A stretch of 64,000 nt of DNA from Bugula neritina (taxonomy: Eukaryota; Animalia; Bryozoa). The position numbers and the translations under genes were made by a program. How positions within the stretch are numbered: the first letter of the stretch is position 1; every line of letters starts with the position of its first letter. Below, in pieces: positions 15,398-64,000 of this stretch. The notes under the pieces were generated by a model that had not been told where the DNA came from, ran no database searches, and was given only the letters and a program-made list of their open reading frames with translations. The stretch spans positions 4,930,662 through 4,994,661 of the forward strand of contig OZ037770.1 of the NCBI GenBank assembly GCA_964035545.1, in the 5' to 3' direction.

Positions 15398-15398
15398 C

Positions 15399-33235: not shown

Positions 33236-33342
<107 letters not shown>

Positions 33343-33343
33343 T

Positions 33344-36640: not shown

Positions 36641-39600
36641 AACCCCCAGGGAAGAAGAAACGCAGGTCACCCAGACAAATACCGCGTACTGGCGACCAAC
36701 AGTGGCAACAGCCACGACGGACCAGCAAGGGGCTTCGCCCCGTGGCTGCCTTTTCTATGCCTCTTCACAACAGATTCACAGGGCTACAAGTCCAAGAATC
36801 TGGATGGGAGCCCACAAAGGTAGCCGGGAATCTAGCCTCGGCACCCCCGAGGCCTACCTACCACCGCCCCAAGAGACTTCCTTCGCGACCCAAAGCGAGG
36901 GAGGTACTCCCTGCGAGAGTAAGGCCTGAAGAGAGAGTTCAGGTGCAGCCCCATGGGAACAGCTATTTCTTGCCCGGTAAACTGGAAGGCAAAGCTGTTA
37001 CGTTCCTCATTGATTCGGGCTGTACCACAAACCTCTTAAGCCGCCAACTCTTCGACACCCTCAGTGCTAGGGTCAGGGGCGAGATGGAATCATACGAAGG
37101 GGAATACGGCACCCTAGCTGACGGGTCGTGCCTTCCCTTCTATGGTATAATTGAGCTCACGGGACGAGTCCGTGATCAAACGATCCAAGAGACATTCATC
37201 GTCAGTCAGCTCAAGGAGGATGCTATCCTCGGGATGCCGTTCCTAAAAAGGCACGGATGTCACATAGATTTTAGCAGATCTGCCATGATGATGTCCGGCG
37301 GGAACTCGCCTGCGTCGACAAGTTCGGCCGCCCTCTAGTGGGAGGTGTGCAAGTGGTACGCAACCGTATCATACCAGGCCGCTCCCGGGCTACCATTCAC
37401 TGCAGGGTGAATAATAGCCGGATCTCTGGACTCGGGGTAGTTGAAGGCGCGCACGAAAAGATCCAACTTGCCAGCAGTCTGAATCAGCTGACTGAGCAAG
37501 GGGAGATCTTAGTGCAGTGCGTCAACCCCTTTACCGAGCCTATCAAGCTCCCGGCTGGGTCGATGCTGGGCCGTTTTCACTCTGTTCAGGAGGAAGACGT
37601 AGGCCCGTCGCTGGGTGATGCGACAGAGGCACTCCCTCAGTGCCCTACTCAAGGGCAAGGGGCAGTCCCCGCACATCTCCGGGAGTTGTATGACACAGCC
37701 TGTAGCGGCTGCGCGGGACGGTTTGTGGAAGTGGAAGGTGCTGCCTTTCGGGTTGACCTCCGCCCCAGCCACCTTCCAGAGGCTGATGGAGCAAGTCCTC
37801 AGCGGGCTCCATTGGAAGACACTGCTGATCTACGTCGATGATGTCATCGTGATCTCCCCAGATTTCGAGACACATGTCAGTCGTCTGCAGGATGTCTTTG
37901 AGAGACTCCGAGGTGCCGGTCTTAAGCTCAAGCCTTCTAAGTGCGCTCTATTGCAGCCAGAGGTTAAGTACCTGGGGCACGTTGTCGGTCGAAACGGCGT
38001 GGCAACGGATCCCGAGAAGGTACGGGCAGTAGAAGACTGGGTCACCCCCCAAGACTTGACCGGACTCCGGGCTTTCTTGGGGCTGGTAGGGTATTACAGG
38101 CAATACATACCAGACTTTGCGGGCATAGCACAGCCGTTAAACCGGCTCACCGCAAAGGGAGTGACGTGGCAGTGGACCCCAGTCGAACAAGAAGCGTTCG
38201 ACCGCCTCAAGGGCTGCCTACTAACGGCGCCCATCTTGGCCTACCCAGACCCCACTCTGGAGTACATCCTCGACACGGACGCCAGTGACCAAAATGTTGG
38301 CGCTGTGCTGTCACAAGTGCAGGAAGGCCGAGAAGTAGTAGTAGCCTACTACAGCAAGTCTCTCTCACCCACTGAAATTACTGCACTACCCGCAAGGAGC
38401 TGCTGGCAGTAATAAAGTCAGTGAAGCACTTCAGACCATACCTATACGGCAGGAAGTTCCGGCTGCGTACGGATCATGCCTCGCTGATCTGGTTGTGCAA
38501 GAGAGCAGAGCCCTCTAGTCAGGTCGCCCGGTGGCTCGAAATCCTAGCTGAATTCTCATACCGGATCGAACATCGACCGGGCAAGAGACACAGCAATGCG
38601 GATGGGTTGAGTCGCCGACCTGACGGAGGTTGCAAACAGTGTCTCAACATCGAGAGGAGGGATGGAGGTCCCCCGCGATGCGAGTTGGAGACGCTGGCTC
38701 ATCACGGAGCACCGTTTGACTGGGACCAAGGTCAACTCAGGCAAAGAGTTGATGAGTCACCGGAGGATGTACAAAACCTCCGCGCCAACCCTGTACTGGC
38801 CGGTAATGTTCGAGAGCTGAAGAAGCTCCAAGAAGAGCTGCCTGGAGTCGTGGCAGACATATACCGGGCCAAAAGGGAAGGGCGACGACCCAGCGAGGAA
38901 CGCATACGACAGGGATGCGCCGAGTTCCGGCTATACTGTCAGCGTTGGGACTCGCTGCGGATCGGGCAGGATGGGTTACTAACCATCTCTCTAGCTGCCA
39001 GCGACAGACACCCGGAAAGGAAGAGGGTAGTCTGCCCCACGGCCATCCGCCGTGAGTTGATTTGGGATACTCACAAACAGGCCCACGCAGGGGTCAAGAG
39101 AGTGATGTCCAAATTACGACTCCGGTGGTATTGGCCACAAATGGAGCGTGACGTCCGGCTCAGAGTCAAACAGTGTGAGATCTGCCAGGCCAGTAAGCAT
39201 AGCCGCCCCCCTGGTGAAGCAGGACGGCGGAGGCTATATGCTGGTAGGCCCTGGCAAGTAGTCGCTGTAGACCTGGTTGGACCCATGCCCCTGACCCCCA
39301 GAGGCAATAATTGGATCCTAGTACTAACCGACCACTTTACTAGGTGGGCGGATGCTCTGGCTATCCCAGATGCGTCAGCCCCAACAGTGGCCAGGGCACT
39401 AGACCAACATGTATTCTGTTATTTTGGGCTCCCCGAACAGATACACTCTGATCAAGGCGCTCAATTCCAGTCCCAACTGATGAGCGACCTTTGTCACCTC
39501 TGGGGAGTAAATCAGAGCAGGACCACCCCCTACCACCCTCAAGGTAACGGGGTGGTGGAGCGCAACAACCGGATGCTAGGTGATGCACTCCGGAGTCTCC

Positions 39601-40686
39601 TCCTTGGACGAGGTCAAGAGGAATGGGATACGGTGTTGCCGCAAGTCATGCGTGCATACCGTAGCACCCCACACACCAGTACTGGTGAGACCCCAAACCT
39701 CTTGATGCTCGGGAGAGAGACTCGTGTCCCTGACCATCTCACCTATCACGTTCCAGAGCAAGACAACTCGGTTCACGAGTATGCCAGTGAACTAGTGGAA
39801 CGGATGAAGGCCGCACACGATATACTGCGCCAACAGCAGTGGAAGGTGCGGCACGATGATTCCGATGAACCACTTCTCTATCAAATGGGAGATAAGGTGT
39901 GGATGGTCAATTACCGTAGGCGTCGTGGACAGGCTGATAAACTGAAGCCTGAGTTCGTAGGCCCTTACGTGGTCGTCGAGGCTATGCCCAATCATACGTA
40001 CAAGATTGAGCGCTCAGGACAGGTGTCTATCCAGAATGAGTCTCGCTTGAAACCGTATTGGGCTAGCCCCGACGGAGTGGGAGAAGCCCCCCCCGTTGTT
40101 AGAGCCCAGGAGGCAGACAACAACGCGCGGGCGACGGCGGCATGGACCTGAATACGAAGTGGTCATACCGCGGGAAGAGAACTTGGTGAGAGAGGAGCGG
40201 CAGCTTTTGTCAACAGAAGCGTGTCCGCCACCGCCAAGTCTAATTCCATCACTTCCAGAAACCGAACCGGTTCCAGAAGTGCAAACCCCCACGGAGGGAG
40301 GGGCTCCGTCCGGAGAACAAGAAGAGGTGACCGCTAACGGTGAAGTAGAGACGCCATTAGAGGCCCCTACTAACGAACCGGCAAGCGTGTCACCCCCCCT
40401 AGAAAGGGGACAGCGTACGAGGCAACCCCCCGCATACTTGAAGGACTTCATATGCGACTGCGTTAAAAGCGGCGTGTATGAAAGTCTAGGGGAAAACCGT
40501 ACAAGAAAAGTATCAAGCAAATGTGGGAGTTGTCAACACCACGGAAATATCAACTTTTGTATCGGCGGAAATAGAAACAAAATTCATCCGCCGGGTGCAC
40601 AAAGTCTTAATCACGCACCCCAACCACGTTGCTCGATCTTTTCATACGCTGATGCAGTCAAGAGTAGACGTGTTTCTAAGCAGTAG
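36589..40686 (+). pseudogene. pol: Fragmented pol of element C
   Basis: ORFs 36529-37338 (LIDSG), 37338-37841, 37615-38412 (YVDD), 38421-40151 (IN) and 40096-40686; near-identical to B pol from RT onward. Confidence 0.92.
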
Positions 40687-40966
40687 TTCAAACCATTTCA
40701 CAAATTCAGTATGTCTTACAACAACAGATCGTGGGGTGAGTTAACTATATCCTAATACGAAACTAGATTGCATCGCTCAGCTCTGACTCACTGAGTCAAT
40801 CGAGCTGGAGATAGGTTAGTGAAATACCGTAGTAAGAACTCAGTTTGACTTAGAGATTTTTATAATCTCATTGCAATACGTGTTCTATCTGACTATTCAC
40901 TACCATAAATCTCTACGAGGTAACTGAATTAGGAGTTGCCAAGCTATTCAAGCTGACAACACGGCA

Positions 40967-41782
40967 GTGTACTGTATTAACACTGTTGAAACTTTTTCAG
41001 ATTACACTCGACCCGCTACAACCAGGGTACGGGATAGAACACTTCCCGCTCCGCATCCGGAGGAGTATGCTAGTGGTGACCGGCCTGAGCCACTACGCCG
41101 CCGTTGGCGGTGGGTGTCTCCACAAACAGAGGAAGAAATAGAAACGGCCTGGGGGTCCAGAGGACGGACGAGATGCCAGATCTGTGGTGAAGAATGCGCC
41201 TCTCACCGCTCCCTTAAACTACACGTCAATGCTCATCTCCTACTAACATTCTGCCCCTGCGGGTACAATGATGTGTATCCCTACCCCGTCACCAGACACC
41301 GAGCGACGGGCTGTTTCCCTGGAGAAAACTACGTGGTCGACGCTAAGCTATACCCGGAGTTCCTCACACTTATACGACCTCTGGTGAAGAAGGCCATGCT
41401 GTTAGCTGTTCTGTCCTCGGGGTTCCAACGTGTGTTAGACAACGCCCGCCAACAATCCCCGTTGGTGTCTGACCGCCCTCAAATTACATACACCCCCGAG
41501 GAGATTACATATCCAGAAGAAGGGGAGATCTCCCCTACCCCGACGAAGAGACGAACCAGGTCCCCCAGCCCCCCCTTGCGCCGCAGACGGACACCGTCCC
41601 CAGACCCAGTCCGCCTAGCCACAGTAGAAAAACGCCTCCTACGATTACAAGAAGAATTCACCCAGCTGGCACCAGATCTACTTAATACTACCACAGGACT
41701 CTTCCAGCTAAAGGGATCCGTATGCCGTATGAAACGGAAACTGCGTACCTGCCAAGCCAAGCACCGGCGTGCCCAACAATGA
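40967..41782 (+). CDS. ORF3 of element C (zinc-finger, RS-P-rich, coiled coil), intact
   Basis: Near-identical to 8875-9696; acceptor actttttcag| at 41000. Confidence 0.75.
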   Translation: MYCINTVETFSDYTRPATTRVRDRTLPAPHPEEYASGDRPEPLRRRWRWVSPQTEEEIETAWGSRGRTRCQICGEECASHRSLKLHVNAHLLLTFCPCGYNDVYPYPVTRHRATGCFPGENYVVDAKLYPEFLTLIRPLVKKAMLLAVLSSGFQRVLDNARQQSPLVSDRPQITYTPEEITYPEEGEISPTPTKRRTRSPSPPLRRRRTPSPDPVRLATVEKRLLRLQEEFTQLAPDLLNTTTGLFQLKGSVCRMKRKLRTCQAKHRRAQQ

Positions 41783-42499
41783 CTCTGGTTCTGCTGCCGG
41801 AATAATCTGCAATTTCATCCTCTTGGGGGAACCCAGGACCTCGTGCAAATGCTTGACTGCTTGACAGGTTATTCCTTGTCTAATACCACAGCTAGCCGGT
41901 ATTCCTCGTCTATAGCTGGTCAATTGTAGGTAACAGATTGTTATAATGACTCTGCCTATTATTATGTCTCTTCCTGTATATTATGTATTATTTTTGTCCA
42001 CTGATGTATGTAGTTACTAATGAATGTTTTTTTTATATATATATCAGAAAGAGGGCTTTCTGCTGGTGGGGGCGGTGTGGTGGTTCGTGGAACTACCAGC
42101 AGCACAACATGTAGGGTCGCGTAATTGACCCGGAACAATGGATAGCCACTTAGCGTGTTTGATAGTTAGCAGCAATTACAGTTTCTCGCTGCTAAGGCAG
42201 TCGAAGCTAGAGTGTCAAATAGATTAGATGTGTAACTTGTTTGAATATAATGTATCGTTTTTATAATGTATTATTGTGTGTAAAATATACTCGTTCACTC
42301 GACTTATCCTGGTGCAGTTCTATAGCAAATAAATAGACTCTCTGGATAGCACATCAACCCTAAATCTGAAAAACATAACAATATGCAGGTATATCCATAT
42401 ATTTTGTTACTTATTCATATATAATCTATGTTTTAGATAGAGCTGTTGCGCCTTAGCTGATACTTATCACCAATCAAGACAAGCTACTAATTGGTAGCC

Positions 42500-45400
42500 A
42501 TGGCAACGGCTGGTGAGTGAAGTTAAATACTATTTTATTCACTTATATATGGAGAGTAGAAATATTTAACCTCTGAAGCTATGTTGATGTTATGCCCAAA
42601 CCATTTAATATATATCTATAAAACTATTTGATTATCATTACTTCCTATAATACTGTTTTATGTCACTAATTAGCGTAATACTGTGAAAATAGAACAATAG
42701 GTAAAATTATGCTAGCAGTTGGGTTAGAGTTGTCTTATCTCAACATAATAAACACTGAGCTATAAACTATATATTGAGTGATTATTTCGAAATAATTTAT
42801 TACTATAGAATAAAATATATGTTATATAGTTATATACAGCTATGAAAACTGAAATCCACCATATCATAAATATATTCAAGGGGTAGATGGCAGGTGTTAG
42901 AATGATAGACACCACCTGCTATAAGCACTGTGTAATAATCACACTATCACTGTATGGTGTTACAGAGAATATGAGAATCTGGTTCAGACATTCGGGTCAG
43001 CCTCTTGTAAGCTGGGAGGATGTACTGAAAGGTACTACCAAGTCATATGCTACTGCTGAGGTAAAACGTGAAGTTGGGAGATATGATATCACAGCTCTGA
43101 AACTGGAGGGGACAATTTCAAGTAACATTGGAAAGATTGCTGGTAAAGCCAGGTGTCTATGTGTTTCTAACCTCAATGACAGAGCAAGTCTGGACAAGTT
43201 AGTGTCTATTACAATAGCTGTATAATTGCTAAATGAGCTCATTTGTGTTATCAATTCAATAATAACAGATAAATTTTGCAGTTACTATTAACAGATAGCT
43301 GTATTTTACTGACAATCATGCACAATTATCAAATCTTTCTTAGCTTCTTGCCTTAACCACTTTAACTATCCATTGCTAAAATGATACACTATATATAGCA
43401 ATACTTGGTAAGCATTATATCAACATGTGAATTTTTGAATGTTTGAAATAATAACAGATTTCGCAAACCTCTCAGGTAGAGTAGATAATTTACAGCCCAC
43501 CATATTCATTATGTTTAAAAGCACAAAGCTATAGATTGTGATTTGCTTGAGATTATATTGTATTAGAGTTTCTCAAAACTTGAATATAACCATGTTTTAA
43601 TCATTTGGCATCACATACTCTAATGTTATAAACCTTAGTTAACAAATAATGTAGCACCCACTTGTACTTTACTAGTATCTATTTCTCATTAAATGCTTAT
43701 TAGCTTTCTGTATTTTACCCCGAATACACCTTGTCGGAATATATTTGTTTCTTGGATATTTTACTTGATTGGATATACAAGTAGTATATACAGTATATAA
43801 CATTATCCTGATACAGTGGATTACATATATTATGTACCTTTTATTACAGTTTATGTCAGCTGACTCAGTTAGAGAAATTAGACATAGGATGGAATTTTCT
43901 CTATACAGTACCAGAAGTTGTGTCATCATTCACATCACTTAAAGAGTTGAACATGTGGAGCTGTAAATTATCTAATCTACCTGAGAGGTCTGTTAGTCAC
44001 AATACTCTTTCTGTGTCAGAAATTCAATCACTCACATCTTTACATGCTTGTCAATTATTGCTAGAGTATATAATCCTACATTGTTATGTTCGAAGGCCTT
44101 ACAATTTTTTTTTAGTAGTTTTTCACATCCTGTGAATAACCCAGTTTCAAGGTATGAGATTGTATGGTATTATGCCACAAGACCTTTTTGTAATTTATAA
44201 CAAACAGCCATCTATAGTTTACTGGCAATCATGCCAAGTTTCGAATCTTTCTTAGCTTCTTGCCTTAACCACTTTACCTATCCATTGCTGGAATGATTTT
44301 GTTTTCTGCATTTTTACCTGGCTGACTACGCTTCAGCAATATAGTCTATACAGTGTATATTATTATCACACAGTAGACTACATATCTCTTACCCTTTATG
44401 ATTATACAGTCTATGTCAGCTGACTCAGTTAGAGGAACTATACATAGGATGGAATCCTCTCTACACAGTACCAGAAGTTGTGTCATCATTCACATCACTT
44501 GAAGAGTTGGATATGTGGGACTGTGATTTATCTACTCTACCTGAGAGGTCTGTTAGTCACAATACTCTTTCCGTTTCAGAAAGTCAATCACTCACATCTT
44601 CACATGCTTGTCAATTATTGCTAGAGTATATTATCCTACATTGTTATGTTCGAAGGCCTTACAATATTTTTCTAAGTTTTCTAAAGCATAAAGCTATAGA
44701 TTGTAATTTGTTTGAGATTATATTGTATTAGAGTTTCTCAAAACTTGAAAATAAACTTGTTTTAATCTTTTGGCATTACATACTCTAATGGTATAAACCT
44801 TCCTTAACAAATAATATAGGACCCACTTGTACTTTACTAGTATCTATTTCCCATTAAATGCTTATTAGCTTTTTGTATTTTACCCTCAATGTGCCTTGTG
44901 GGAATGAATTGGTTTCTTAGATATTTTACCTGATTGGATATACAAGTAGTATATACAGTATATAATATATTATCCTGATAGAGTGGATTACATATATTAT
45001 GTACTTTTTATTACAGTTTATGTCAGCTGACTCAGTTAAAGAAGCTGAACATAGCAAATAATCCTCTCAACACAGTACCAGAAGTTGTGTCATCACTCAC
45101 ATCACTTAAGGAGTTGAATATGTTGGACTGTAAATTATTTGCTCTACCTGAGAGGTTTGTGGAGTCTTTTTTTTATTTCAAACATTCAATAATTCACATT
45201 TTGATATAATGCTTACCAAGTATTGCTAAATAGTGTACCATTATGTACCGTTAAAAAGCACAAAGCTGTAGATTGTAATTTGCTTGAGATTATATTATAT
45301 TAAATTTTCTCGAAACTTGAAAATAACCATGTTTTAATCATTTGGTATTACACACTCTAATGGTATAAACCTTCTTTAACAAATAATGTAGCACCCACTT

Positions 45401-48400
45401 GTAGTTTACTAGTATCTATTTCCCATTAAATGCTTATTAGCTTTCTGTAGTTTACTTTGAATATGCCTTGTCGGAATAAATTTGTTTCTTGGATATTTTA
45501 CCTGATTGGATATACAAGTAGTATATACAGTATATAATATTACCCTGATACAGTGGATTACATATATTATGTACCTTTTATTACAGTCTATGTCAGCTGA
45601 CTCAGTTAGAGAAACTAAACATAAGATGGAATCCTCTCAACACAGTACCAGAAGTTGTGTCATCACTCACATCACTTGAAGAGTTGAAAATGGAGAGCTG
45701 TAACTTATCTACTCTACCTGAGAGGTTTGTGGAACACAGTCCTAAGTTATTCAATAATTCAACATTTCACATAAATTTATATGCCTACCATTTCTTTCTA
45801 AAGTGTATATAACCCAATTCTGCTATGTTAAAAACTCTAAAATGTTTCTTTTTTAAATTATCTCGTAGTTTGCCATAACCTTGAAATATCATCAGTAATT
45901 TATGGTTGTATAACATTGAATATTATTATGCCACAAGACCTTTTTGCAATTACATGTAATTAACAAACAGCCATCTACAGTTTACTGGCAACCATGTCAA
46001 TTATCGAATCTTCCTTAGCTTCTTGCCTTAATCACTTTGACTATCCATTGCTGGAATTATTGTGTTTTCTGCATTTTTTACCTGGCTGACTACGCTTAAG
46101 CAATATAGTCTATACAGTGTATAATATTATCACACAGTAGACTACATATATCTTAGCCTTTATGATTATACAGTCTATGTCAGCTGACTCAGTTAGAGAA
46201 ACTAAACATAAGATGGAATCCTCTCAACACAGTACCAGAAGTTGTGTCATCACTCACATCACTTAAAGAGTTGAATATGGGTAGCTGTAACTTATCTACT
46301 CTACCTGAGAGGTTTGTGGAACACAGTCCTAAGTTATTCAATAGTTCAACATTTCACATAAATTTATATGCCTACCATTTCTTTCTAAAGTGTATATAAC
46401 CCCATTCTGCTATGTTAAAAACTCTAAAATGTTTCTTTTTAAAATTATCTCGTAGTTTGCCATAACCTTGAAATATCATCAGTAATTTATGGTTGTATAA
46501 CATTGAATATTATTATGCCGCAAGACCTTTTTGCAATTACATGTAATTAACAAACAGCCATCTACAGTTTACTGGCAACCATGTCAATTATCGAATCTTC
46601 CTTAGCTTCTTGCCTTAATCACTTTGACTATCCATTGCTGGAATTATTGTGTTTTCTGCATTTTTTACCTGGCTGACTACGCTTAAGCAATATAGTCTAT
46701 ACAGTGTATAATATTATCACACAGTAGACTACATATATCTTAGCCTTTATGATTATACAGTCTATGTCAGCTGACTCAGTTAGAGAAACTAAACATAAGA
46801 TGGAATCCTCTCAACACAGTACCAGAAGTTGTGTCATCACTCACATCACTTAAAGAGTTGATTATGTGGAGCTGTCAATTATCTGCTCTACCTGAGAGGT
46901 TTGTGGAGTCTTTTATTATTTCAATCATTCAATAATTCACATTTTGATATAATGCTTACCAAGTATTGCTAAATAGTGTACCATTATGTACCGTTAAAAA
47001 GCATAAAGCTATAAATTGTAATTTGCTTGAGTATATATTATATTAAAGTTTCTCGAAACTTGAAAATAAACATCTTTTAATCATTTGGCATTACATTTCC
47101 TATTGCTATAAAACCTTCGTTAACAAATAATATAGCACCCACTTGTAGTTTACTAGTATCTATTCCCCATTAAATGCTTATTAGCTTTTTGTATTTTACT
47201 TTGAATATGCCTTGTCGGAATAAATTTGTTTCTTGGATATTTTACCTGATTGAATACACAAGTATAATATACAGTATATATAATATTATCCTGATACAGT
47301 GGATTACATATATTATGTACCTTTTATTACAGTCTATGTCAGCTGACTCAGTTAGAGAAGCTGAACATAGTGAAGAATCCTCTCAACACAATACCAGAAG
47401 TTGTGTCATCACTCTTATCACTTAAAGAGTTGAATATGAGGAGCTGTGAATTATCTGCTCTACCTGCGAGGTTTGTGGAACACAGTCTTTCTGGTTTCAA
47501 ACATTCAATAATTCACATGTTGATATAATGCTTACCAAGTATTGCTAATTAGTATGTCACTATGTATTGTTGAAAAGCATAAAGCTATAAATTACAATTT
47601 TCTTGAGGCTATATGATATTAGAGTTTCGCAAAACTTAAAAATAAACATGTTTTAATTATCACACATTACATTTCCTATTGCTATAAAACCTTCTTTAAC
47701 AGATAATATAGCACACACTTGTAACTATAGTTACTAGTATCTATTTCCGATTAAATGTTTATTGGCCTAGCTTTTATATTTTACTTTGAATATACCTTGT
47801 CGGAATAAATTTGTTTCTTGCATATTTTACCTGATTGAATACAGAAGTATAGTACATACTCTATATGTGACCAGTCGCGACAAAACCGGGGATGTGGCGG
47901 CGTTTATTAAGTGTAGTAAATGAAGGTTTAATTTGGAAATACTTAAATTTGAAATTAATTTCCAATTTTTAGATTTTAGACTTTTCTAGTGCAAAAAAAT
48001 CTAAGGATTTCAAAAATCATACTTTCGTAAGCATTTGATGATTCCTTCAGCTCTAAAATTGCATTTAACGTTGGTAACTAAGGCTTTCAATTTTTTAAAT
48101 GATGAAAAAATTGCGAAGTTATCGATTAAAGAAAGAAGACAATTTTAGTCACTTTCATAGCATGAGATCTTGCGAATTTATTTTTTATCAAATGAATTTA
48201 GCTTACACCTCTCTCTTCGTACTGTCAGAACCATCATATTTAAAATCGAAGGCTAGTTTTAGTTTTTCATCGTGTTCCATCCAAAGTTAGCTTTTAAGTT
48301 ACTGAGCTGTTTTGCCCTTTGGTGATAAATGCTGAACTTAATCTTTATCTTTAGCGTTCAAGCTTGAAAACCACAACAATACAGGTAATTATACTCAAAA

Positions 48401-51400
48401 CAATCATTTACGCTACTAACTTAGAATTGTTGCCAGGATTATTTGTAGTTATCAATTTAATAATATTTATACTATGACTAGGAGTAGGAGTCTGTCTTAG
48501 TCTATTCTATTCTATACTACTACTAGTAACTATTTAAATGACTTTCACTATGACTCACAGTTTGAGGTACGGTTACTCATAATGATAATCATAATGACTA
48601 TTATTCATGATTTACTGATACTGGTATTTGGTAGTAAAACCAAATGTAACTCATTAATAATACTAATAGTAATAGTATAACTTATAACTATAAGTATAAG
48701 TAATTAATAATTATAAATTCACTATTACCATTAGTATTACTATTACTTATTACTTATTAGTATTACTGTATTATTATTTGGGTCTGACTCTGAGTTTTGC
48801 CTTTGCTATTAAAACTTGATACTCATACTGATAGTATTATATTTATTGATTTATTCTATAGTTAATATTTCAATTTACATTAGACTTACTCTTACTCTTA
48901 GTTACTTTTAGCCTCTGTCTTAGATTTTGTCAATACAGTTACTGATTACTATTACTATTAGTATTAACATTTGGCCTACTAGTACTAGTCAAACTACCAG
49001 TTCCTTTTGTGATTTTTAAATTAGCTCAAAGTTTGATTTAAAATATAATGATAAAATCTTTATCACATTATGCAGGCTTACAGTTAGTGTTACTATCAAA
49101 ACTCAATTGATAATCATATTTATATTCATAAAAGCATCACCTATAATTAAATTGAAATGATAAATGTGACTAAATGTAAATGATTATAATGATGAAATAT
49201 TAATGCGAGTTCATGATGATTCTATAGTTGACTTGACTTAGTTTTTCAGTAACTTACTTTTAGTCTTATTTAGTGAGTAGTAACACTAACTGAATGCATA
49301 AATAGTCTAAACTTTTTAATTTTATTATAAGATGAGCAAAAATTTATTCATATTTTAAAGTAATTCATTGAATTCAAATTGATTTTATAGTAAATGTCTT
49401 CAATAGGTTCAGTTGCACTTAGCTAGCTTTTTTACTCAATTAAATGCCCGAGTGGTTAATAGTTATCTAAAGACATTGCTTCAAAATTGCCAATTGCAGA
49501 TATGCTAGATATTCAAGTGCATAATGTGTAATTTTACTGATAATACTATGTTAATATAGAATAATCCGATATTCTGTACATTTTAGAAAATGCACTTGTG
49601 AGGGCATTAGAGTGAAGACTTATACCTACACAACTCTACTACCTATCAATCTAATACTTCTAATGTAGACACTCCGAATTATGGCTTGCAAGGTTATGGC
49701 TTCTGCTTATTTCATTCATAAAAAGGTTTGCAGTCTTTTAATGATGTGCTTGAAAATTATCAAGCATTTTTTTAATTTAAATTGTTCTGTTTAATTCAAT
49801 AAATTTAAACGTTGATGAAATGCAGGATCACAATTAACTACTGCCATAATAGTACTACAAGAGTGTTCAGCCAACTAAATTTTTATAATATAACTGGGTA
49901 TAATTTCTAATCAAGCTACCGTTTCCTTTTGTTATTTAAAAAAAAGTCAACATTGTACTTTCAGCTCTGGAATAGACAATAAGTGGGTAGATTTGCAGAA
50001 TGGAGGTCAAGTAGCAGCATCTATAATTGCTAGAAAATCAACTGATGATAGTGATGAAGCTTTTGCCACATACATGATGTTATGTGTCCATACTCCGTAA
50101 ACTCATATTATGAAGACCAAGAAAGTAGAAAGATGATAAGTGCCTTCTCTGCAAAAACCGTAGAAGCTATCTAATTTTCTTTTCTTGATAAGAGTTAATT
50201 CAAGCATAATGGTTGTATCCAGGCTGGATTTTTTACTGCATTCAATTGGTTTTTTAAAATAATGTATTTGATGTTTTTTTTAAATGTGAATATTAATGCC
50301 TAATAAAACTCAAAAGTTCGAATAGCTGATTTTTGTTTATAATATTTTCAACATCTCAGCCAAATCAATTGCTAAATTTAGTTGCTGTTAGAGATTATAA
50401 AGATATTTATAAATGAACCTCGCATGATCTCATAATAGTCAAATAATTTTCTCATAAGTGTTCTACTCATAAAGCAATAATTATGAAACAGCACAGCTCA
50501 ATAGCTGCAGTTTGATATATTACAGAATATATTAGAGGAAAGGGAGGTATTCAATGTATAAGAGGAAGCAGCTGCCATTTTGTTTTATATGATTTCCTGC
50601 TGACTTGGATGCCTAATTTAAATATCTCAACACACAAACTTGCTGAAACATCTTCTTTGCTGGAATTGTTAAACCTTTCAACCATTAAACAAAGTAAAAA
50701 GCAAATTGGCAAATAAATTAGACAAAAAGTTTGACGGCCATATTTGACCTAATTTCATGTTGAGGCAGCATGAAATTTAGTTTAACAGAAAGCCCAAACT
50801 TTCACAATTATTTTGATACCAAATTTGTCACTATTCCTGTTATACAAAGACCCGTTGCTAAGGCTTGTAAATTGTAAACAAATAATTCTCAACTTATTCT
50901 AGAGTTGCCAACTTTAAACGCGATTTTCTCGAAACAGTAATTTAGAAATTCTAAAAACGTTGAGGTTTTTAAATACTGATATCTCGAGTTCTACTTATGC
51001 TAGAGACTTCAAATGAAGTGCAAAATGTTCAGAAAAGTCTGCTCTATCACTCTATAGTGATAACTAGATATCCAACATTTTATATACATCCCTTGCTTTG
51101 TGGTGCCAGGTCACATATACAGTATAATATAATATTATTCTGATAGATTGGACTATATATATGTACATTTTCTATACTTTTTATATTACAGCTTATGTCA
51201 GCTGATTCAGTTAGAGAAACTACACATAGCAGATAATTTTCTCTACACAGTACCAGAAGTTGTGTCATCACTCACATCACTTAAAGAGTTGTATATGTGG
51301 AACTGTAAATTATCTACTCTACCTGAGAGGTTTGTGGAACACAGTCTTTCTTGTTTCAAATACTCAATAATTCACAGGTTGATATAATGCTTACCATGTA

Positions 51401-54400
51401 TTGGGAATTAGTATATCACTATGTATTGTTGAATAGCATAATGCTATAAATTATTATTTTCTTGAGGCTATATGATATTAGAGTTTCTCAAAACTTGAAA
51501 TAAATATGTTTCAGTTATCTGGCATTAAATTTCCTATTGCTATAAAACGTTCTTCAACAAATACTATATAGCACCCACTTGTGGTTTACTAGAATCTATT
51601 TCACATTAAATGTCTTTTACTTTGAATATGCCTTGTCGCAATAAATTTGTCTTTTTTCTGCATGTTATACCTGATTGAATACACAAGTATAGTAGACAGA
51701 GTACGTACTATTATCCTGGTACAGTAAATTACATATATTATGCACTTTATATTACAGTCTATGTCAACTGAATCAGTTAGAGAAACTAGACATAGCAAGT
51801 AATTCGCTCTACATGGTACCAGAAGTTGTGTCATCACTCACATCACTCAAAGAGTTGGATATGTGGAGCTGTACATTATCTACTCTACCTGAGAGGTTTG
51901 TGGAACACAGTCTTTCTTGTTTCAAACACTCAATAATTCACACATTGATATAATGCTTACCCAGTATTGCTAATTAGTATGTCACTATGTGTTGTTGAAA
52001 AGCATAGAGTTATAAATTACATATTTCTTGAGGCTATATGGTATTAGAGTTTCTGAAAACTTGAAAATAAATATGTTTCAGTTATCTGGCATTACAAATT
52101 TCTTATTGCTATAAAACCTTTTTAACAAATAATATAGCACCTACTTGTAGTTTACTATAGTGTGTATTTCTCATCAAATGGTTATTAGAGCCTTCTGTAC
52201 TGTACTTTGAATAATATGCCTTAGAGTAATAACTTTGCTACTTGGATATTTTACTTGATTGAATATGCAGTGTTTGTTATGATACAATAGATTAAATATA
52301 TCACATACTTTATATTACAGCCTGTGCCAGCTGACTCAGTTAGAGAAACTAAACATAGGAGGGAATCCTCTCAACACAGTACCAGAAGTTGTGTCATCAC
52401 TCACATCACTTGAAGAGTTGAATATGGAGATATGTAACTTATCTACTCTACCTGAGAGGTTTGTGTGCCACAACAAATTTTATATATCACTTTTAACATT
52501 CAACAATTGTTATTTTGAAGCAGAATTTCAACACAGTAAGTACTACATTGAGATGTATATACTTTTTCTCTGCAAACCTCCATATGAATCTTCCCGTTGC
52601 TGGGCATATTGTCAATTAGCACACTATCTAGAAGTTTCCTCTGCTTCACAAGTTATTTTATAGTATTTCTATATCTTTTTGAATATTTCCCATGATAGGT
52701 TGACTGGGCTGTTTTTCAGAAGTCGTTTTAATAACTCTTTTCATTATATTATAACTATAGCTACTTCTGTACACATAATTGGTATATATTATATTATTAT
52801 TATAGTAAAACAGTTTCTTATTACTGTCTGATTGAATGCACAAGTGCTATATACAGTACATAATATAATCCTGATACAGTGAATTACATATATTGTGCGC
52901 TTTATATTACAGTCTATGTAAGCTGACTCAGTTAGAGAAACTAGACATAAGTGGAAATCCTCTCAACACAGTACCAGATGTTGTGTCCTCACTCACATCA
53001 CTTAAAGAGTTGGATATGAGGAGATGTAACTTATCTAATCTACCTGAGAGGTTTGTGTGTCACAGTCTTTCTTGTTTCAAATACTCAATAATTCACAGGT
53101 TGATATAATGCTTACCATGTATTTGGAATTAGTATATCACTATGTATTGTTGAATAGCATAATGCTATAAATTATTATTTTCTTGAGGCTATATGATATT
53201 AGAGTTTCTCAAAAGTTGAAAGTAAATATGTTTCAGTTATTTGGCATTACATTTCCTAATGCTATAAAACCTTCTTCAACAAATACTATAGCACCCACTT
53301 GTAGTTTACTAGAATATATTTCACATTAAAATCTTATTAGCTCATTCGCTTATTTAACTTTGAATTTGCCTTGTTGCAATAGTTTTGTTCCTTGGATATT
53401 TTACCTGATTGAATAGACAAGTATAGTATACACAGTATATAATATTATCCTGATACAGTAGATTACATATATTGTGCGCTTTATATTACAGTCTATGTAA
53501 GCTAACTCAGTTAAAGAAACTAGGCATAAGTGGTAATCCTCTCAACACAGTACCAGAAGTTGTGTCATCACTCACATCAATTAAAAAGTTGGATATGTGG
53601 AGCTGTGGATTATCTACTCTACCTGAGAGGTTTGTGTCATCCTAATGTTTGAAACATTCAATAATTCACATGTTGATATAATGCTTATACCAAGTATTGC
53701 TAATTAGTATGTCACTATGTATTGTTGAAAAGCATAAAGCTATAAATTAGAATTTCTTTGAGGCTATATTGTATTGGAGTTTCTCAAAACTTGAAAATAA
53801 ATATGTTTCAGTTATCTGGCATTGAATTTCCTATTGCTATAAAACCTTCTTCAACAAATACTAAAGCACCCACTTGTAGTTCACTAGAATTTTTTTCACA
53901 TTAAATGTCTTTTACTTTGAATATGCCTTGTCATACTAAATTTGTGTTTTTTTTTTCATGTTATACCTGATTGAAGACACCAGTATAGTATACGGAGTAC
54001 ATACTATTATCCTGATACAGTAGACTACATATATTACACACTTTATATTACAGTCTGTGCCAGCTGACTCAGTTAGAGAAACTACACATAAGAGACAATC
54101 CTCTCAACACAGTACCAGAAGTTGTGTCATCACTCACATCACTTAAAGAGTTGGATATGAACAACTGTAAATTATCTACGCTACCTGAGAGGTTTGTGTC
54201 ATCTTAATGTTTGAAACATTCAATAATTCACAATTTGATATAATGCCTACCAACTACCAAGTAGTGCTAATTATTATGCCATCATGTATCGTTGAAAAGG
54301 ATATAGCTACAATAGATTACAATTTTCTTGAGACTATATGACATTAAAGTTTCTCAAAACTTTAATTAAATAAACATGTTTTAATCATCTGGCATTACAT

Positions 54401-57400
54401 TCTCTATTGCTATAAACCTTTCTTTAACAAATAATTTAGCACCCACTTGAAGTTTACTAGAATATACTTCACATTAAATGCTTATTAGCTTTCTGTATTT
54501 TACTTTGAATTTGTTTTGTTGCAATACATTTGTTTCTTGGATGTTTTATCTACTTGAATATGCAAGTATAGTATACAGAGTACATCCTTTAATCCTGATA
54601 CAGTGGATTACATGTATTATACACTTTATATTGCAGTCTATGTCAGCTGACTCAGTTAGAGAAACTGGACATAGGATGGAATCCTCTCAACACAGTACCA
54701 GAAGTTGTGTCATCACTCACATCACTTAAAGAGTTGGATATGTGGAGATGTAACTTATCTACTCTACCTGAGAGGTTTGTGTGCCACAACAAATTTTATA
54801 TATCACTTTTAACATTCAATAGCTATTATTTCATAGCAATATTTCAACACAGTAAATACTACATTAGGATGCAAACCTGCAAACCTACATATGAATCTCA
54901 CCGTTTCTGGGGATATTGTCAATTAACACACTATCTATAGAAGTTTCCTCAACTTCACAAATTATTTTATAGTATTTCAATATCTTTTTTGAAATGCTTA
55001 CCATGATAGGTTGACTATGCTTTTCTTCAGAAATCGTTTTAATAACTCTTTTCAATATATTTTAACTATAGCTACTTCTGTATACAAAATTAGTTTTTAT
55101 TATATTATTTTAATAACATATTATCTCATTATTTTCAAATTAGTCAGAAAACCACTTCCTTATATTTTCAATGACATCATATATCACATACTTAACTCAA
55201 TAAACTGTATTGTGTAAGGCTCATTAGTAACAATGCATGGTGGATTATATAGTATGTTTTACTTAAATAATCACATTTGAGGTACAAATATTTCGACATG
55301 AAAGATCTGACATTATATTGCTAACCTAAGAAGAGAAAACAAATCATATATTGCCACTTTGTTTTTTGCATGCTCTACTTTAGTTGTCTCTCTCAACTCT
55401 TGGTGTAGTAGAAGCCAATTTTTATTCTATTCCTGTTCTCAAATAACCAATGAATATATTTCTTTATATCTAATTCACATTTTTAAGTGACTAATTAACT
55501 GGCCTTTAAAAGTGTAACATGTTCCTTGCAAGACGATGACTTTCCAGAGTTGTATTCTATCATAGTGAAATAATTCACAGCTTCTACTTTCTGTCTAAAA
55601 ATATGCTGCATTTATTAGAATACTTAGTGGGAAGTTGTGTCAGAAGTATTTTTTTTTATTGAAACTACTTTAATGCCTTGCGTAGGTGTTTCAGAGCTGT
55701 ACTGTGTTCCTATTTGATGATAAATTACATGTATTATGGCACATAAAACAATATTCCTTATAATTATAACATCCATATAGTAGAATATCAGTGTGAACAG
55801 TTACTCAGTGATCAGAAGTGTCAGAAGTATTTTATTTTTACTTCACATTACTTTAATGCCTTATGCAGCTGCCACAAAGCTGTAGCCTACCATGTTCCTA
55901 TTTGCTGATAACTGTATCATGGCACATACTAGAAATTTTCTTCTCTGTATTATAAAATATTATTCCTTCTAGTAGAATACTTGTGTGAACAGTTACTCAG
56001 TGATCTGCCATATAGAAAAAGATTTCTGTATGATAGTATTCTGTCTAGGGTGTGTTTTTATGACAGTACTTAGTACAAATGTAGCACTTTTCTTACCAAA
56101 TATACTTATAATTATACTGTTATATATATCTCTATGAAATACTTAAAACTTTATGCATCGTATATATATAACATGATACCCGTACATAATTGTAACTTAG
56201 ACATACTTGTTTTCTTTCCTAAATTAATGTACTAATTCAAGGTATTGTATATAAACTTGTTATAGCAACTGCAACTCAGTACTATATTATGTGTAATTAT
56301 TGTTATACTAATATTGGGTATCTTTATGAAAACTATTATATCAATTATCTGTATAGTTAGGTCTAATAATAGAAATATTATATATTGTTAGAATACAGAG
56401 ATTAAAGAAGTTACAGAAACTCAACATTTCAAGGAATAAATTCACCAGTCTCCCATCTTCAGTATGTGCATTGAGCAATCTGCACATACTGAATATATCC
56501 TACAACGAATTTATGGAATCTTTGAGCCCTGAGATACTACAGCTAACACATCTTAGGACCTTCGATACATATAGCTGTGATGCTCTTACATCTCCTCCAC
56601 TGGAAGTCTGTAAAAGAGGACTCGATGCTGTGCGACAATACTACACAGACTTGGCTAAAGGTGCTGGTAGAAATCTTCCATTTGCTACAATAGTGGTGTT
56701 GGGGAACACCATGGCAGGTAAAACCAGTCTAATCAGAACATTACAGAGCACTGACAAGAAAAGAGTTTTAACTGACAGAAGTCCTAATGCAGAGTATGAT
56801 GAGACCACAAAAGTGTTCAATGTGGAAGAGGTGGAGGTGGATGGTACAACTCTTCGTCTCATAGATATGGGAGGCCAGGAGGTCTACCATATCACATACC
56901 ATTTAACACTGAGACAGAATTGTGTACCAGTAATTGTAGTCAACATGGAGCAGTATGATCAGATTTCGAAAATGTCTACAGACAGAGAGGCTGTGAGAAA
57001 GCTGGCTTTTGACTTCATGTCTCACCTCTATCTCGCTCATCCAACTCTTGGCCCACCTAAGCTTGTTTTCACACACAAAGATAAGTTTCCGAGTGAAGTT
57101 TTCCAACGGCTTCGAAAAAAGTTTCTTAAAGTTTCTGAGAAGTTATGCAAAAATATTCTTGAAGAAGAGAACAGTTTGGAAGGTGACTTTGCTCGAATTC
57201 AACATTTCACTGCATCAAACGGAAAAGTGTTCTCCAATGACAACATATATGAAGTTGGGAAATTTGACGAGTACAAGATATTTGAATCGATTAAAAAATC
57301 TCTTCTTCAAAGTTGCCAACACTTTGTGAAGCCACTTCCAAAAGTCTGGGAGGATGTCAACAACAACATTTTGTCATTACAGACCTCACATAACACCTTT

Positions 57401-60400
57401 GATGAAATATTGGCTATGATAAACGAAAAGCAGGATAACATTGAAGCAAAACACTTGGATACGATTATCATGTACATGCATGATTGTGGCAAAGTTCTCT
57501 GGTATAAACATATTGATGCACTCAGGCCATACATATTTCACAAGATCACGGAAATTACCAAGCTACTCTGTGTCTTGTATCATCATGATCCAGACGTCTG
57601 GCAAAGTAGAGTTGATCAGTTCCAACCGTATTTTTCAATGGAAGGAGTGAGGATTGAAAAACAAGAATTTGAAGAGTTTGTGAATTCCTTTAGAATCAAT
57701 GGCTTGATGATGAAATCTCTTCTTGTATATTTGATTTGAAAAGAAACTTCGTTCACTGGTGAAAATGATGTGAAAATTGCTGTTTGCTTGCTCAGAACAT
57801 TCCGTTTATTGTATGGCCCTTTGAATAATGATTCTGAAGATCCGTACTTCATAGTCCCTCAGTTTGCCAAAGAATCCTACAGCCTCTCCTACACTCCGCC
57901 AAAGGAGCTGATGCTTTATACCGAAACGCAGTTTAATGGTCTGGCATTACCACAGCATGTCTACCATCAGATGACGGTTGGTTTGCTGGAACTATTTGCT
58001 GACAATTCTGCCACAATACAGGTGAAGAGAAATGGAGCAAATGTCTATCAAGATAAAATATATACACAGCTGATACATGACTATGAATCTAAAAGAGTTT
58101 TGCTCTACGCGTCATCTGATGCAAATAATATCACCAAAGCGTGGGAAAAACTCATTTCAGTCAACAACAACATCCTCAGACATGTTATGGAAACTTGGAC
58201 TGCCAGTCGTCCAGTCACTGCCTGCATCTGTGCTCACTGCTTACTGCTAGGTGTTCTGTGCCCTAAAAAGTCTATTCATCCTAAATGGTGTTTTCGCTCC
58301 CTGATGAAACCTACACCAGTTGTCAAGAAGTGCAGCGGATCTTCAACAATCTTGTGCAATAATGAGGAGATCCCAAGAGCTCTGATTTTTCCATGTATGT
58401 ATCACTAATATTGTTTATTACTATGATTTTATAAATGGAAACTTTTGCCTACTACATAAATGATTTTCTTTACTACAAACTCTAAACAAAACCTGCTAAA
58501 AAATTTTTAAATTTGAAAATAATCAAACAAAAGGCATTATATCTCGTGTTGTAACATTCTTGCAGTGGTTCTGTCTCAACTTATGTTTAGCTACCATTTA
58601 AGTTGATTACAGTATACATAATATGTGAGCTGGTTGTAGTATATGTAGACTGCACTGTTTTATTCAGGTGAGGCATTGTCTGAGAAAGAAACCGATGAGC
58701 TCGTGAAGCTATTGACTCAACTCAAACTTCGTAAACAACAGAATGATGCAACCAGAATTGGTATATCTGTATAATACTCACTTTATCAACCTTTAATGTT
58801 ATTAAAGAATTCAGAGATCTCAATACATGCAGCAGTTCGTTTACTCTGACTAGAATTTTTAGAAAACTGATTGTTTTTGTCAAGCGATCAAGGAAATGGC
58901 AATTTTGCTATTCTTCTGTTTTTTAAATCCTGGTGTTAGCCAATCAAATCATGTGACTGCAGATGATGATGATGATCTGAGTGATCTCTCTGAAGATGAT
59001 GACAATCTGTATCCTGATGAAGACAATGAGAAAGACATGAAGTTGATACAACCCAACCTAAAGACTACCAGAAACCTGAGGATTAAGAATCTTTTCTCAA
59101 ATGCTGAACAGGTTGGTGCATCAGTTTAGGGTCATATGTTCACCTTATTCGTTAGATTCTTATGCTTGTATAACCTATTCTTAGACAGAACATTATAAAC
59201 ACATGCATCTGTAGCAAAATGATACTATTTACTGTTAGCTTTATTATTAGGCCATGTGTGCCTCAAACATGTTTAACTAGATTTACAAATATGTCAACTA
59301 ATACTATCATTTTTAGTATATTTTTATCCAGGTGTTCAGTATGACCAGAGAGAGAGGAAGAGCTCTGATAATAAACAACAAGAACTTTGTTGAAAGACCA
59401 GACTTATGCAGGGAAGGTTCAGATGCTGATGTTGAGAATATGTCTCTCATGTTGAGATCTCTCAAGTTTGATGTTGAGACACACTCAGACCTGACAGCAG
59501 AGGTATGTTGTTATGGTGAAAACAATGCGAGCACTATTTAACCATCAAGTAGATTTTCGTATATAATGTCTTGTTTGTTCTTTAACCAAATATTTTGTAA
59601 AGTTTGTAGTATATTTTAACAAAATATTTTTTTTCACATTCACTGAATTATATCTTTAATTGTACTTAAGAATTTTTCTAAAGCTGCATTGAAAATTTTG
59701 GGTCTTGTTAGTTTTTGCTCACTTTTTGGTTTTTTGTTAGGTTGATGAGAAAACTTTTTGCTCACATTGCATATGAGTCAGCTTACTTCATTTAGTACAC
59801 ACCAGGAAATTATGACCTAACATTAAAGTTTACTCATAATCCATTGAAATTTACCATACATGGTATATTTATGTGCTGATTTTAACTACGCATAACAGAA
59901 AAGGTTAGCTAGGAGGGGATTCCCCAACATTAAAGCACAGGTCATTGTCATATGCACTTATTATTTTATATGTGCGGACCGTTACGAAAAAACTGTGACT
60001 GTCTGCAAGTCCAAATTAGCTAAATAATTAAGAAAGACATGGGAAATTAAGCATAATCAAAAATCATCTTGACTATTTAGTTGTATTTATTGATATGCTA
60101 TTAGTTTTAGGCAAAAACCTATAAATATTAGCACCTAAATTGAAAAAATAGCTAAAACTGGAGATTTCGAGTGTGTACTAAATTAAGTAAAATGACCCAT
60201 AACTCTATAGCAATTATTTGACACTTTAAATGAAGTAAATTTGTTTGACTGTTTAAATTCGTTTTCAAATTTGTAGGAAATGCTGTCTGCTGTGAAGTCT
60301 GAGGTGAAAAAGGGGAAACACAAAGAGTTTGGATGTCATATACTGGTTGTTATGACTCATGGTAGAGAAGATAACTGTATCTATGGAACTGACCTCGAGA

Positions 60401-61781
60401 AGGTCAACCTCACTGACCTGTGTGATTTGCTCACTCCTTTGTATTTCGATGGAACAAATAGAAAACCTAAGGTTGTCATACTAGAAGCCTGCAGTGGAGG
60501 TAGTTTGTAGTATAAATTTGAACTTTTAGTTCAATGGTTGAACTAGTAAATACTCCCTGTCAGAAACTAGTCATCTAATTAATTGGCGCTTTAACATGAT
60601 TCATAGTTTGGATTGCTTGAGCAACTGGGTGTCTTGAGATTGTTTAGCTCACAATATTAAGGTCGTTGTTATGTATGTGTTACAGCAAACATTGAAGTAA
60701 GCCCAGACAGATCTGGTCTTGCAGCAGATCAAGAAGAAGAAACTGAAGCTGCCTCTTCTACACCTTCTGAAGCTAATGAAGAAGACAATGATGAATATCC
60801 TGAACCGCCAAGAAAAAGAATTAGACTCATTAGACCAGTCTCACCACCAGAACCTAGAATAGAAGAGTGTAGAACTGTACGGGATATAGATGATCTTCTT
60901 GTTCTGAAGAGTAGCGTCTGCTGTAAGTATAGCAAGAGAAAGTTGTTCATTGGTTTGATAAATGTGCAGCTACAGTTTTTTTCAATCTAAAAGTCTGTTT
61001 CCTAAATTTAATCTGACCATGCTATATGTAATCTTTTTCTTGTTCTTCGTAAATTGCGAGTTAATGTTCAAAATCAAACAGAATTTAGAAAATTTCAGGC
61101 TTGCTTTGTCTACACCATGCTTTGAGTTTCATTTAATTTTATTGCAGCATCAAAGAGACATCCTGAGTATGGATCTCCTATGATTAGAGCTCTAGTATCT
61201 TCAATCTACAAACATGCCTGTCATCGTGATCTCTACACCATCTTTCAGCAGGTGAGTTTAAAATGATAATTTTGTCAATTTCTACTTGTATATAGAAATA
61301 TTTTTATGTTTAGCTGTGTGATAATTTACAATTTGCATGTCCAATGAATAAAATATAATGTAAATTAGGTAGCTTCTTAAAACGTGCTCGTATTTTTACT
61401 AATTTATATTTCTCCCACTGTGCCTGTTGTAAAGGTTAAAGCCCAACCTCAAGCTTTTCTTTAATATATTCTATAGTGGTAGCAGACAACTCTCAGGATC
61501 TACTTGCTTAGATTGAATATGAATAGGAAAGCCTAGTTTAGCAGCTGAAAGTTGTACCTTATCACAGCTATAAGTAGTTAGTTAGAACACAGTCTTACTA
61601 GTCATTACTTACTCTACAGGTGGACACTAAACTAGTGAAAAAACTGTATGCAGATGAAGATTCAGAGAGAAGCAGAAATTTGGTTGCAATCTGGAATACC
61701 CTTCCATTCAGTAAAAGACTTTACCTGTTTCCTGGCTTCGATGGGTTTAATAGAGAGGACAACTCCTCACTCAGCACATAA
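42500..61781 (+). CDS. LRR-Roc-COR-caspase (ROCO-caspase) gene, 24 coding exons, ~1757 codons; one in-frame TGA at 57737-57739 (null allele, pseudogene or base error)
   Basis: Exons: 42500-42512 (gccATGG), 42966-43152, 14 LRR exons, 56392-58394, 58668-58760, 58963-59111, 59332-59502, 60277-60499, 60686-60922, 61148-61251, 61620-61781. All introns are GT-AG with matching phases. Total 5274 nt, divisible by 3. Confidence 0.85.
43383..43508 (-). pseudogene. Inverted partial LRR cassette (3' part of exon plus donor and intron)
   Basis: Reverse complement reads AAT ATG GTG GGC TGT AAA TTA TCT ACT CTA CCT GAG AG|gtttg (NMVGCKLSTLPE), followed by the standard intron module ttcaaacattca...ttcacatgttgatataatgcttaccaagtattgc. 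Confidence 0.85.
43850..54774 (+). repeat. Array of 14 symmetric 138-nt LRR cassette exons (2 x 23-aa LRRs each) with homologous introns
   Basis: Exons 43850-43987, 44410-44547, 45017-45154, 45587-45724, 46174-46311, 46761-46898, 47333-47470, 51192-51329, 51758-51895, 52321-52458, 52913-53050, 53492-53629, 54054-54191, 54637-54774. Consensus SLCQLTQLEKLxIxxNPLNTVPEVVSSLTSLKELxMxxCxLSTLPE. All phase 2-2 with no stops. Confidence 0.95.
47864..51117. mobile_element. 3.25-kb non-autonomous TIR DNA transposon inserted in the intron between LRR cassettes 7 and 8
   Basis: Imperfect ~32-bp TIRs (TATGTGACCagtcgcgACAAAaccgGGGATGT versus TATGTGACCtggcaccACAAAgcaaGGGATGT), TA flanks, and the intron module resumes on the far side. 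No intact transposase. Confidence 0.75.
56392..58394 (+). CDS. Large exon: last LRRs, LRR C-cap, Roc GTPase, COR and Cys-rich region
   Basis: LTSPPLEVCKRGLDAVRQY cap; G1 GNTMAGKTS, G3 DMGGQEVYHITY, G4 THKD; COR PLPKVW...YMHDCGKVLWY; CICAHC. ORFs 56471-57739 and 57770-58408 are in the same frame, separated by a single TGA. Confidence 0.92.
59332..61781 (+). CDS. Caspase (peptidase C14) domain exons
   Basis: RGRALIINNKNF...REGSDAD, VMTHG, KPKVVILEACSG, DDLLV, SKRHPEYGSPMIRAL, KRLYLFPGF. Confidence 0.92.
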
Positions 61782-62599: not shown

Positions 62600-64000
62600 T
62601 TAGAAGACATATCATTTAGGAGAAGGTAAACTTCAATCTCAACCCTCCGCTGCCAACCAAAGGAAAGGCTTAATCTGACAGTTCATGCAACGACGCTGGT
62701 GCCGAACTGTAACTGCTCCTGTAGGTACGCCAGCGACGTGGAGAGTGGGGACATGCTACACGGGCAACAGCCTGTTTTCCGTATGATCAATGCCCAGGCA
62801 CACACCTGCACACCACCATCCTTTTCTCACTGGAGAGAAAACTCCGGATTTGCCTTCTGCGGAAACACAACATGTGGAGCGGTTATAAGCTGAAGCTCAA
62901 TTTGTGTAGAGCAAGGCACCAGGTGTTGCTTCTGACGGTGGAAGAGGTCTCTAGATCTCGCTGGACAGTTACCACTCGCAATAAGCTGGGAAGCCTCCAG
63001 CCAGTTAAGTGATCTTCTGCCACAGTCCGCCTTCCTCATTGGGCGCAAAGGAAAAAGAGGACAACCGAACAGCAGACTGCAATCTTTTACGGGGCAACGA
63101 AAAATTGAAAATAAGAGACCAGGTCCTGAATTGAAATGTTTGAAGGTCCGTACTTTGCTAACTTTTCTATTTATCAATTTACAGAACATCAAAGACACCT
63201 GAAAATCATCCATCATAAACGATGAATTCAAGAGAATAAGCGTCGACATTACTACCCTTCAAGAAACGCAACTAGCTAATAGTGGCACTCTATAGAAAAT
63301 TACTACACATGTTACTGGCGGGAAAGAAGTTCTAATTAGCCAAAAGTGTATCAAGTTGGCTTTGCAGTGAAGAACAGTTTCTTGAGTATGGTAGAGCCAT
63401 GTACTAGCAGCTCATTGCATAAGAGCAATGTATAAGGGCATCAAGATGGCAACGGGACTAATCCATAGTAAGATGCCTCCTCTCAAACCTTCCACTGGAG
63501 AAGTCATCACCAAAAAAGGAAAGCAGATAGAGAGATGGGTAGAACACTAGACCCACCTGCACTCTCACCAGAAAGTTGTGTCTTCCTCTGCTCTTGATGC
63601 AGTTGAATGTATGTATGTCCACTATTGATGATTTTGATGACGAAACCACTGTAGATGACCTTGATAACGCCATTGATAGTTTGTCCTAAGGCAAGACACC
63701 TGACAGTGATGGAATATCTCCTGATCACATCAAGCGCTGCAAAACTAATCTTTTACATTCCCTGCATGAAGTTCTTTGTCAGTGCTGGGAAGAAGGTGCT
63801 GTGCCACAAGACATGAGAGATGCAAACATCACCAAACTTTACAAGAATGAGAGAGACAAAAAAAAGATCTCAACAATTAAAGAGGCATCTATTTCACTGC
63901 TCAGCATTGTTGGCAAAGTGTTTGCCAAAGTCATCCTGGCTCACCTACAGATACTAGCTAAACGGGTCTACCTGAGTCGCAGTGTGGTTTAAAGAGCAAA
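62600..64000 (+). mobile_element. Decayed RTE-clade LINE (5' UTR, APE remnant, start of RT); runs off the window
   Basis: PQDMRDANITKLYKN...ISLLSIVGKVFAKVILAHLQILAKRVY and an LQETQL endonuclease remnant, with many stops, frameshifts and deletions. Confidence 0.85.

Follow-up and report, generated by a model that had tools for sequence, protein, structure and literature searches.

A hypervariable array of LRR exons in the bryozoan Bugula neritina belongs to a predicted LRR-Roc-COR-caspase gene

The window, a stretch of 64,000 nt of the Bugula neritina genome whose first letter is position 1 of all plain coordinates given below, contains an array of 14 leucine-rich repeat (LRR) exons, here called cassettes. 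A sequence-only reading of the region stopped at this array; a Roc-COR module, a caspase and a premature stop lie downstream. Given the Roc-COR and caspase exons that follow the cassettes, the gene is classified as LRR-Roc-COR-caspase, and by its predicted exon structure the array is its sensor arm. At a probability of about 0.65, we read the product as a cytoplasmic protein of a large bryozoan family, with cassettes exchanged in the germline and kept under selection, working as an NLR-like immune receptor in one chain. There is good support for the array as a recognition surface, diversified in the germline, of a gene that joins sensor, switch and protease; its function is what we infer.

Cassettes measure 138 nt each, reside on the + strand, are stop-free, are flanked by CAG and GT, and are in phase 2 on both sides. 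Cassettes 1 to 7 start at 43850, 44410, 45017, 45587, 46174, 46761 and 47333 (block 43850..47470), at a spacing of 560–607 nt; cassettes 8 to 14 start at 51192, 51758, 52321, 52913, 53492, 54054 and 54637 (block 51192..54774). The same 14 stop-free exons had been listed in the sequence-only reading, and its lists of x residues in the first and second repeat match ours letter for letter. It had likened them to the exons of Ectocarpus, with one repeat each; here each exon encodes two 23-residue LRRs, the nearest solved structures of which are Leptospira LRR proteins and SHOC2. Variation had been placed at the x positions of an almost fixed framework. The first part stands, as eight codons, picked by motif position (5, 7, 8 and 10 of LxxLxLxxNxL in each repeat), hold 59% of the nucleotide diversity (permutation p 5e-6), with pN 0.43 at these concave-face codons vs 0.05 elsewhere; the framework diverges by 6% at the nucleotide level, and so is not wholly fixed. 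In the translated cassettes 21 of 45 columns are invariant, and the seven x columns named earlier feature 5–7 residue types each. A single-sequence fold of the LRR region of a homologue from the bryozoan Watersipora (pLDDT 69) puts strands on xLxLx in cassette-type repeats, shifted in the first two repeats.

The gene model was built by exon-wise searches and a phase check of the joined exons. Every splice site is canonical, phases agree, and about 1766 codons are interrupted once only. All exons reside on the + strand. A putative first coding exon (42500..42512) has an ATG in a GCCATGG context, a GTGAGT donor, and a frame matching the next exon. The latter (42965..43197) encodes an N-terminal cap and ends in phase 2; it is matched 52 times in the genome, ahead of cassette arrays, and a loose end in run X7 links the end of a cap-like exon to a cassette. 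Downstream of the array, a 2003-nt exon (56392..58394), assigned by Pfam and by matches to PDB 6hlu and LRRK2, encodes three LRRs, a Roc GTPase (GNTMAGKT, DMGGQ), COR and a Cys-rich tail. Roc scores 9.5e-8 in Pfam (32.7 bits vs a cut-off of 27), P-loop and G3 motifs being present. The predicted COR is weak but consistent: COR-A is found at E 0.0014, under the curated cut-off but right after Roc as expected, and at 1.6e-5 in homologue P0085. Two acidic linker exons (58668-58760, 58963-59111) have canonical splice sites and a continuous frame. They are followed by caspase large-subunit exons (59332-59502, 60277-60499; Pfam Peptidase_C14 1.4e-10 and 2.6e-7), matching caspase-8 and ancestral caspase, and by the inter-subunit linker and small-subunit exons (60686-60922, 61148-61251, and 61620 to a stop near 61780), assigned by the KRHP and LFPG motifs. 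Caspase hallmarks are in frame: the His-Gly and Cys dyad, large and small subunits, and S1 arginines (REGS, THG, EACSG, KRHP, LFPG). The active site reads EACSG instead of QACxG, the first residue being Glu in the window gene and Gln in Watersipora. A Pfam search by exon found no NACHT or NB-ARC STAND ATPase in the window gene.

The copy in the window carries an in-frame TGA inside COR (57737..57739, + strand); with the ATG at 42971 as codon 1, it falls at residue 1169 of about 1766. The homologues have AGA at this site in 7 of 7 cases checked, and nearly all of 94 paralogous Roc-COR exons are open over more than 630 codons. The lone TGA is therefore attributed to a nonsense allele, a young pseudogene or an assembly error; the copy, cut off before the caspase, may alternatively be a decoy. 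If the TGA is real, the caspase of this copy is untranslated.

Other elements surround the gene. Two related Gypsy-type LTR retrotransposons reside in opposite orientation at 8200-15800, with an open 1449-residue pol frame, and at 35350-42380. The latter is frameshifted, has LTR segments 99% identical, and comes to an end about 120 nt ahead of the probable start codon of the Roco gene. A third, unrelated Gypsy-like element (gag and a 1017-residue pol) lies at 3206-6966 on the minus strand. Penelope/GIY-YIG-like and LINE-like retroelement fragments, judged by motif appearance only, are found at 33254-34264 and 62600-64000. Minus-strand exons at 19000-25100 probably encode a single-pass membrane protein that has a Thr/Ser-rich stalk and, near 19190, a membrane segment. 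The start of the large LRR-Roc exon recurs at 26853-27234 in a decayed, frameshifted form with 75% identity; cassettes were not found nearby.

Since cassettes are in phase 2 on both sides, they may be gained, lost or exchanged with no frameshift. Duplication and shuffling, as had been proposed, are borne out by incompatible site pairs (56 of 153 informative pairs) and by mosaic introns. Introns 1 and 2 have a common 5' half (95%); the 3' half of intron 1 resembles introns 4 and 5 (94%), that of intron 2 intron 3 (93%). Introns 4 and 5 are 99% identical, which denotes, as judged by sequence identity, a recent duplication. Exon similarity tracks neither flanking intron (Mantel tests not significant), and cassettes resemble one another more than their introns do. 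An inverted remnant (43380..43508, - strand), made by a cassette 3' end, its donor and downstream intron, sits in the intron preceding cassette 1 and is 88% identical to 45115-45242 reversed. Taken together, the mosaic introns, the greater likeness of the exons and the inverted remnant point to remodelling of the array by germline unequal crossing-over and gene conversion. The remnant was also considered as a Dscam-like docking site; no second copy of its junction was found among the 40 best genome places scored, and it is taken as a local inversion. Intron 7 measures 3.7 kb because of a 3.2-kb insertion (47871..51116) with short inverted ends (TGTGACC/GGTCACA) and no long ORF, probably a non-autonomous DNA transposon. 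Closely spaced or shortened cassette copies lie directly upstream of the large exon in paralogues L006:1082, L017:86 and L023:210-519, and are further signs of array turnover.

Selection was analyzed with our own GY94-type site models, fitted to the 14 short cassette sequences. Models allowing positive selection are favoured (2dlnL 76.7 for M1a vs M2a, 79.7 for M7 vs M8) and place 14.5% of sites at an omega of about 13; posteriors are at least 0.98 for codons 11, 13, 14, 36, 37 and 39, and just 0.45 for codon 34. As cassettes recombine, the test was checked against 76 data sets simulated with no positive selection, each block of 1, 5 or 15 codons being given its own tree. The statistic reached 23.9 at most, and a recombination artefact is thereby ruled out. 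Divergence is 0.40 at x codons, 0.21–0.25 in flanking introns and 0.06 in the framework (framework pS 0.10), so that the x positions, predicted earlier to be diversifying, exceed both the framework and the introns. Across 30 paralogues the same positions are also the most variable ones of the large exon's three LRRs, and in an apparently orthologous cassette from another sample all four x sites of the second repeat differ. Diversifying selection on the concave-face residues is, at the level of codon comparisons, well supported.

Similar genes are numerous. In the 216 Mb of genome searched, at least 94 Roc-COR exons were identified, mostly clustered on C6 and C1, and a caspase exon resides 2–17 kb downstream on the same strand in all of the 30 closest paralogues (best 30 of at least 94). 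A 22-nt framework word has 354 genome sites, vs 2 for a control word, setting the cassettes at no fewer than 354. Counted from coordinates alone, which gives lower bounds, the cassettes of neighbouring genes number from at least 4 to at least 15 per gene; paralogue C6:6032092-6131204 has more than 20 across about 95 kb, with sub-periods of 343 and 442 nt. Cassettes of 47 residues occur in other clades of the family. Genes at C1:32.79-33.67 Mb and 35.22-35.49 Mb have Roc-COR just 40–54% identical to that of the window, yet carry near-exact C6-type cassette words (a 22-mer, one change allowed, has 51 sites, and an exact 15-mer has 19 on C1). Those at 32.79-33.67 Mb have a cap exon in common with the window gene, and closer Roc-COR relatives (about 67%) carry a different cassette type. 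This distribution suggests either exchange of sensor modules between distant paralogues or strong nucleotide constraint. At C7:5.07-5.11 Mb and 7.58-7.71 Mb near-identical caspase exons and distant cap-exon matches were found, with Roc-COR absent among the matches listed; the cluster possibly consists of LRR-caspase genes devoid of the GTPase. A NACHT search of the genome gave one partial match only, a lower bound because introns split domains.

The invertebrate origin assumed for the array agrees with its named homologues, which all come from the bryozoan Watersipora subatra (31–41% identity) and are labelled 'MFHAS1 homolog' at NCBI. XP_067947674.1 and XP_067948342.1 are full-length LRR-Roc-COR-caspase proteins, and one Watersipora gene also features phase-2 two-repeat exons variable at the same positions. 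A protein of the brachiopod Lingula, the next relative examined, has a C-terminal CARD-like domain. No description of an animal Roco-caspase fusion was found in a literature search of incomplete coverage.

In the mechanism that we propose, all or most cassettes would be spliced in tandem into one LRR solenoid of about 31 repeats. Symmetric phase-2 exons would let germline crossing-over and conversion add, remove and exchange cassettes with no frameshift, while selection would diversify the concave-face residues. Ligand binding by the LRR would change the nucleotide and dimer state of Roc-COR, and this change may bring two caspase domains together, leading to proteolysis and cell death. The same machinery might instead serve allorecognition or chimera control, the variable LRR sensing polymorphic self and non-self proteins between colonies or zooids and killing at the contact zone, as fungal NLR incompatibility genes do. 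The animal is colonial, fast turnover and selection fit equally well, and bryozoan allo-incompatibility by cell death is mentioned in PMC8195603. However, about 90 paralogues on several chromosomes suit pathogen surveillance better than one histocompatibility locus, and the predicted protein is cytoplasmic, neither a signal peptide nor a membrane segment having been seen in it; this role is considered unlikely.

Runs X7 and X8, guessed to be RNA, were inspected over region 51800-57790; their contigs come from another sample, and are not assignable to a paralogue of origin. Depth reaches hundreds to thousands on exons but drops to almost nothing in most introns. GT..AG joints, absent in X1 and X2, lead from cassettes 9, 11 and 13, at their ends, to the start of cassette 14. 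Exon-biased depth and cassette joints indicate that the family is transcribed and that cassettes are spliced to cassettes, which excludes a strict Dscam-type array of mutually exclusive exons. Cassettes are thus tandem exons of one gene. A reading in which combinatorial alternative splicing or somatic cassette rearrangement creates an anticipatory repertoire could draw on the symmetry of the exons, which allows skipping, on joints that seem to skip cassettes in X7 and X8 and on skips from intron to intron in X1, and on the alternative splicing later reported for brown-algal ROCOs (PMC11378527). But joints that run backward have as much support as skips, and at least one third of the records fit two places; this denotes cross-mapping of paralogues, and the skips are not credible. 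The inverted remnant, unrepeated in the places scored, provides no shared docking site. All cassettes are intact exons with canonical splice sites inside one gene, rather than parts of an incomplete germline gene as in VLRs, and neither recombination signals nor, in the pooled contigs inspected, read evidence of somatic assembly were found. The single test of cassette order between individuals, in which the array at C1:22.72 Mb and its orthologue on a contig of another sample are collinear (8.4 kb, 91%, five cassettes), also speaks against rearrangement, but concerns a dispersed gene of another clade and says nothing on the C6 cluster. The anticipatory repertoire postulated earlier thus finds no support in what was seen, namely germline tandem exons joined to each other, and the combinatorial reading is quite unlikely. 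Its boldest form, in which some 90 one-chain LRR-Roc-COR-caspases largely replace bryozoan NLRs and zooids or cell lines re-mix exons by splicing or somatic recombination into an anticipatory repertoire heritable by budding, is a highly improbable speculation.

A developmental or housekeeping scaffold, serving for example zooid turnover, with repeats varying by drift, conversion or local hypermutation, would agree with the evident conversion and with the raised synonymous divergence of x codons (0.25 vs 0.10), but is largely refuted and very unlikely: structural codons 12, 15, 33, 35, 38 and 40, next to x codons, show zero synonymous change, which rules out regional hypermutation, codon 11 varies at its first two positions only, and simulations of neutrality plus recombination never came near the observed statistic.

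Lamprey VLRs are surface or secreted proteins; their germline gene is incomplete and is filled in somatically with non-exonic cassettes that flank it. LRR cassettes and a hypervariable concave face are common to both, but the bryozoan germline gene is complete and spliced, and its product cytoplasmic. With NLRs (NACHT or NB-ARC plus LRR) the gene shares sensor-switch-effector logic, clusters, birth and death, and diversifying selection; in contrast, the switch is a Roc GTPase and not a STAND ATPase, and the domain order is reversed. Bacterial LRR-AP-GTPase(Roc)-COR-effector proteins, predicted counter-invader systems with at least 24 effector types including caspase (PMC8195603), similarly combine a fast-evolving LRR, a Roc-COR switch and a C-terminal effector, but the bryozoan gene is intron-rich, has a metazoan-type caspase (matching caspase-8 and ancestral caspase), and belongs to a family of about 90 genes. 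The LRR-Roc-COR core is also found in animal ROCOs of the MFHAS1/MASL1 type and in those with TIR, Death or CARD domains (TIR or Death in Aplysia, PMC9334734; Lingula XP_013419969.1). These have adaptor domains or none, whereas the bryozoan chain has a catalytic caspase and an LRR made by exchangeable cassettes.

The gene also resembles brown-algal LRR-ROCOs (PMC3341825, PMC11378527), in LRR-Roc-COR, equal-length symmetric repeat exons, inverted intronic remnants, tandem clusters, pseudogenes and positive selection on the concave face. In Ectocarpus each repeat has one 72-nt exon, inverted copies lie in introns, selection acts on the concave face, and somatic recombination was merely hypothesised (PMC3341825). 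The parallel drawn earlier holds for exon exchange, inverted remnants and concave-face selection. In contrast to the 24-residue, one-repeat exons of Ectocarpus, those of Bugula measure 138 nt, encode two repeats and are in phase 2, with 47-residue versions in other clades and in Watersipora; caspase is not described in the algal proteins. The likeness is probably convergent. The family would be a case of ROCO GTPases evolving like immune receptors in an animal, apparently independently of brown algae, with a caspase effector in the same chain. The latter makes testable the long-open question of what Roc-COR dimerisation does, as protease activity would serve as a simple read-out. Bryozoan immunity is little studied, and a candidate receptor family with mapped selected sites is now at hand.
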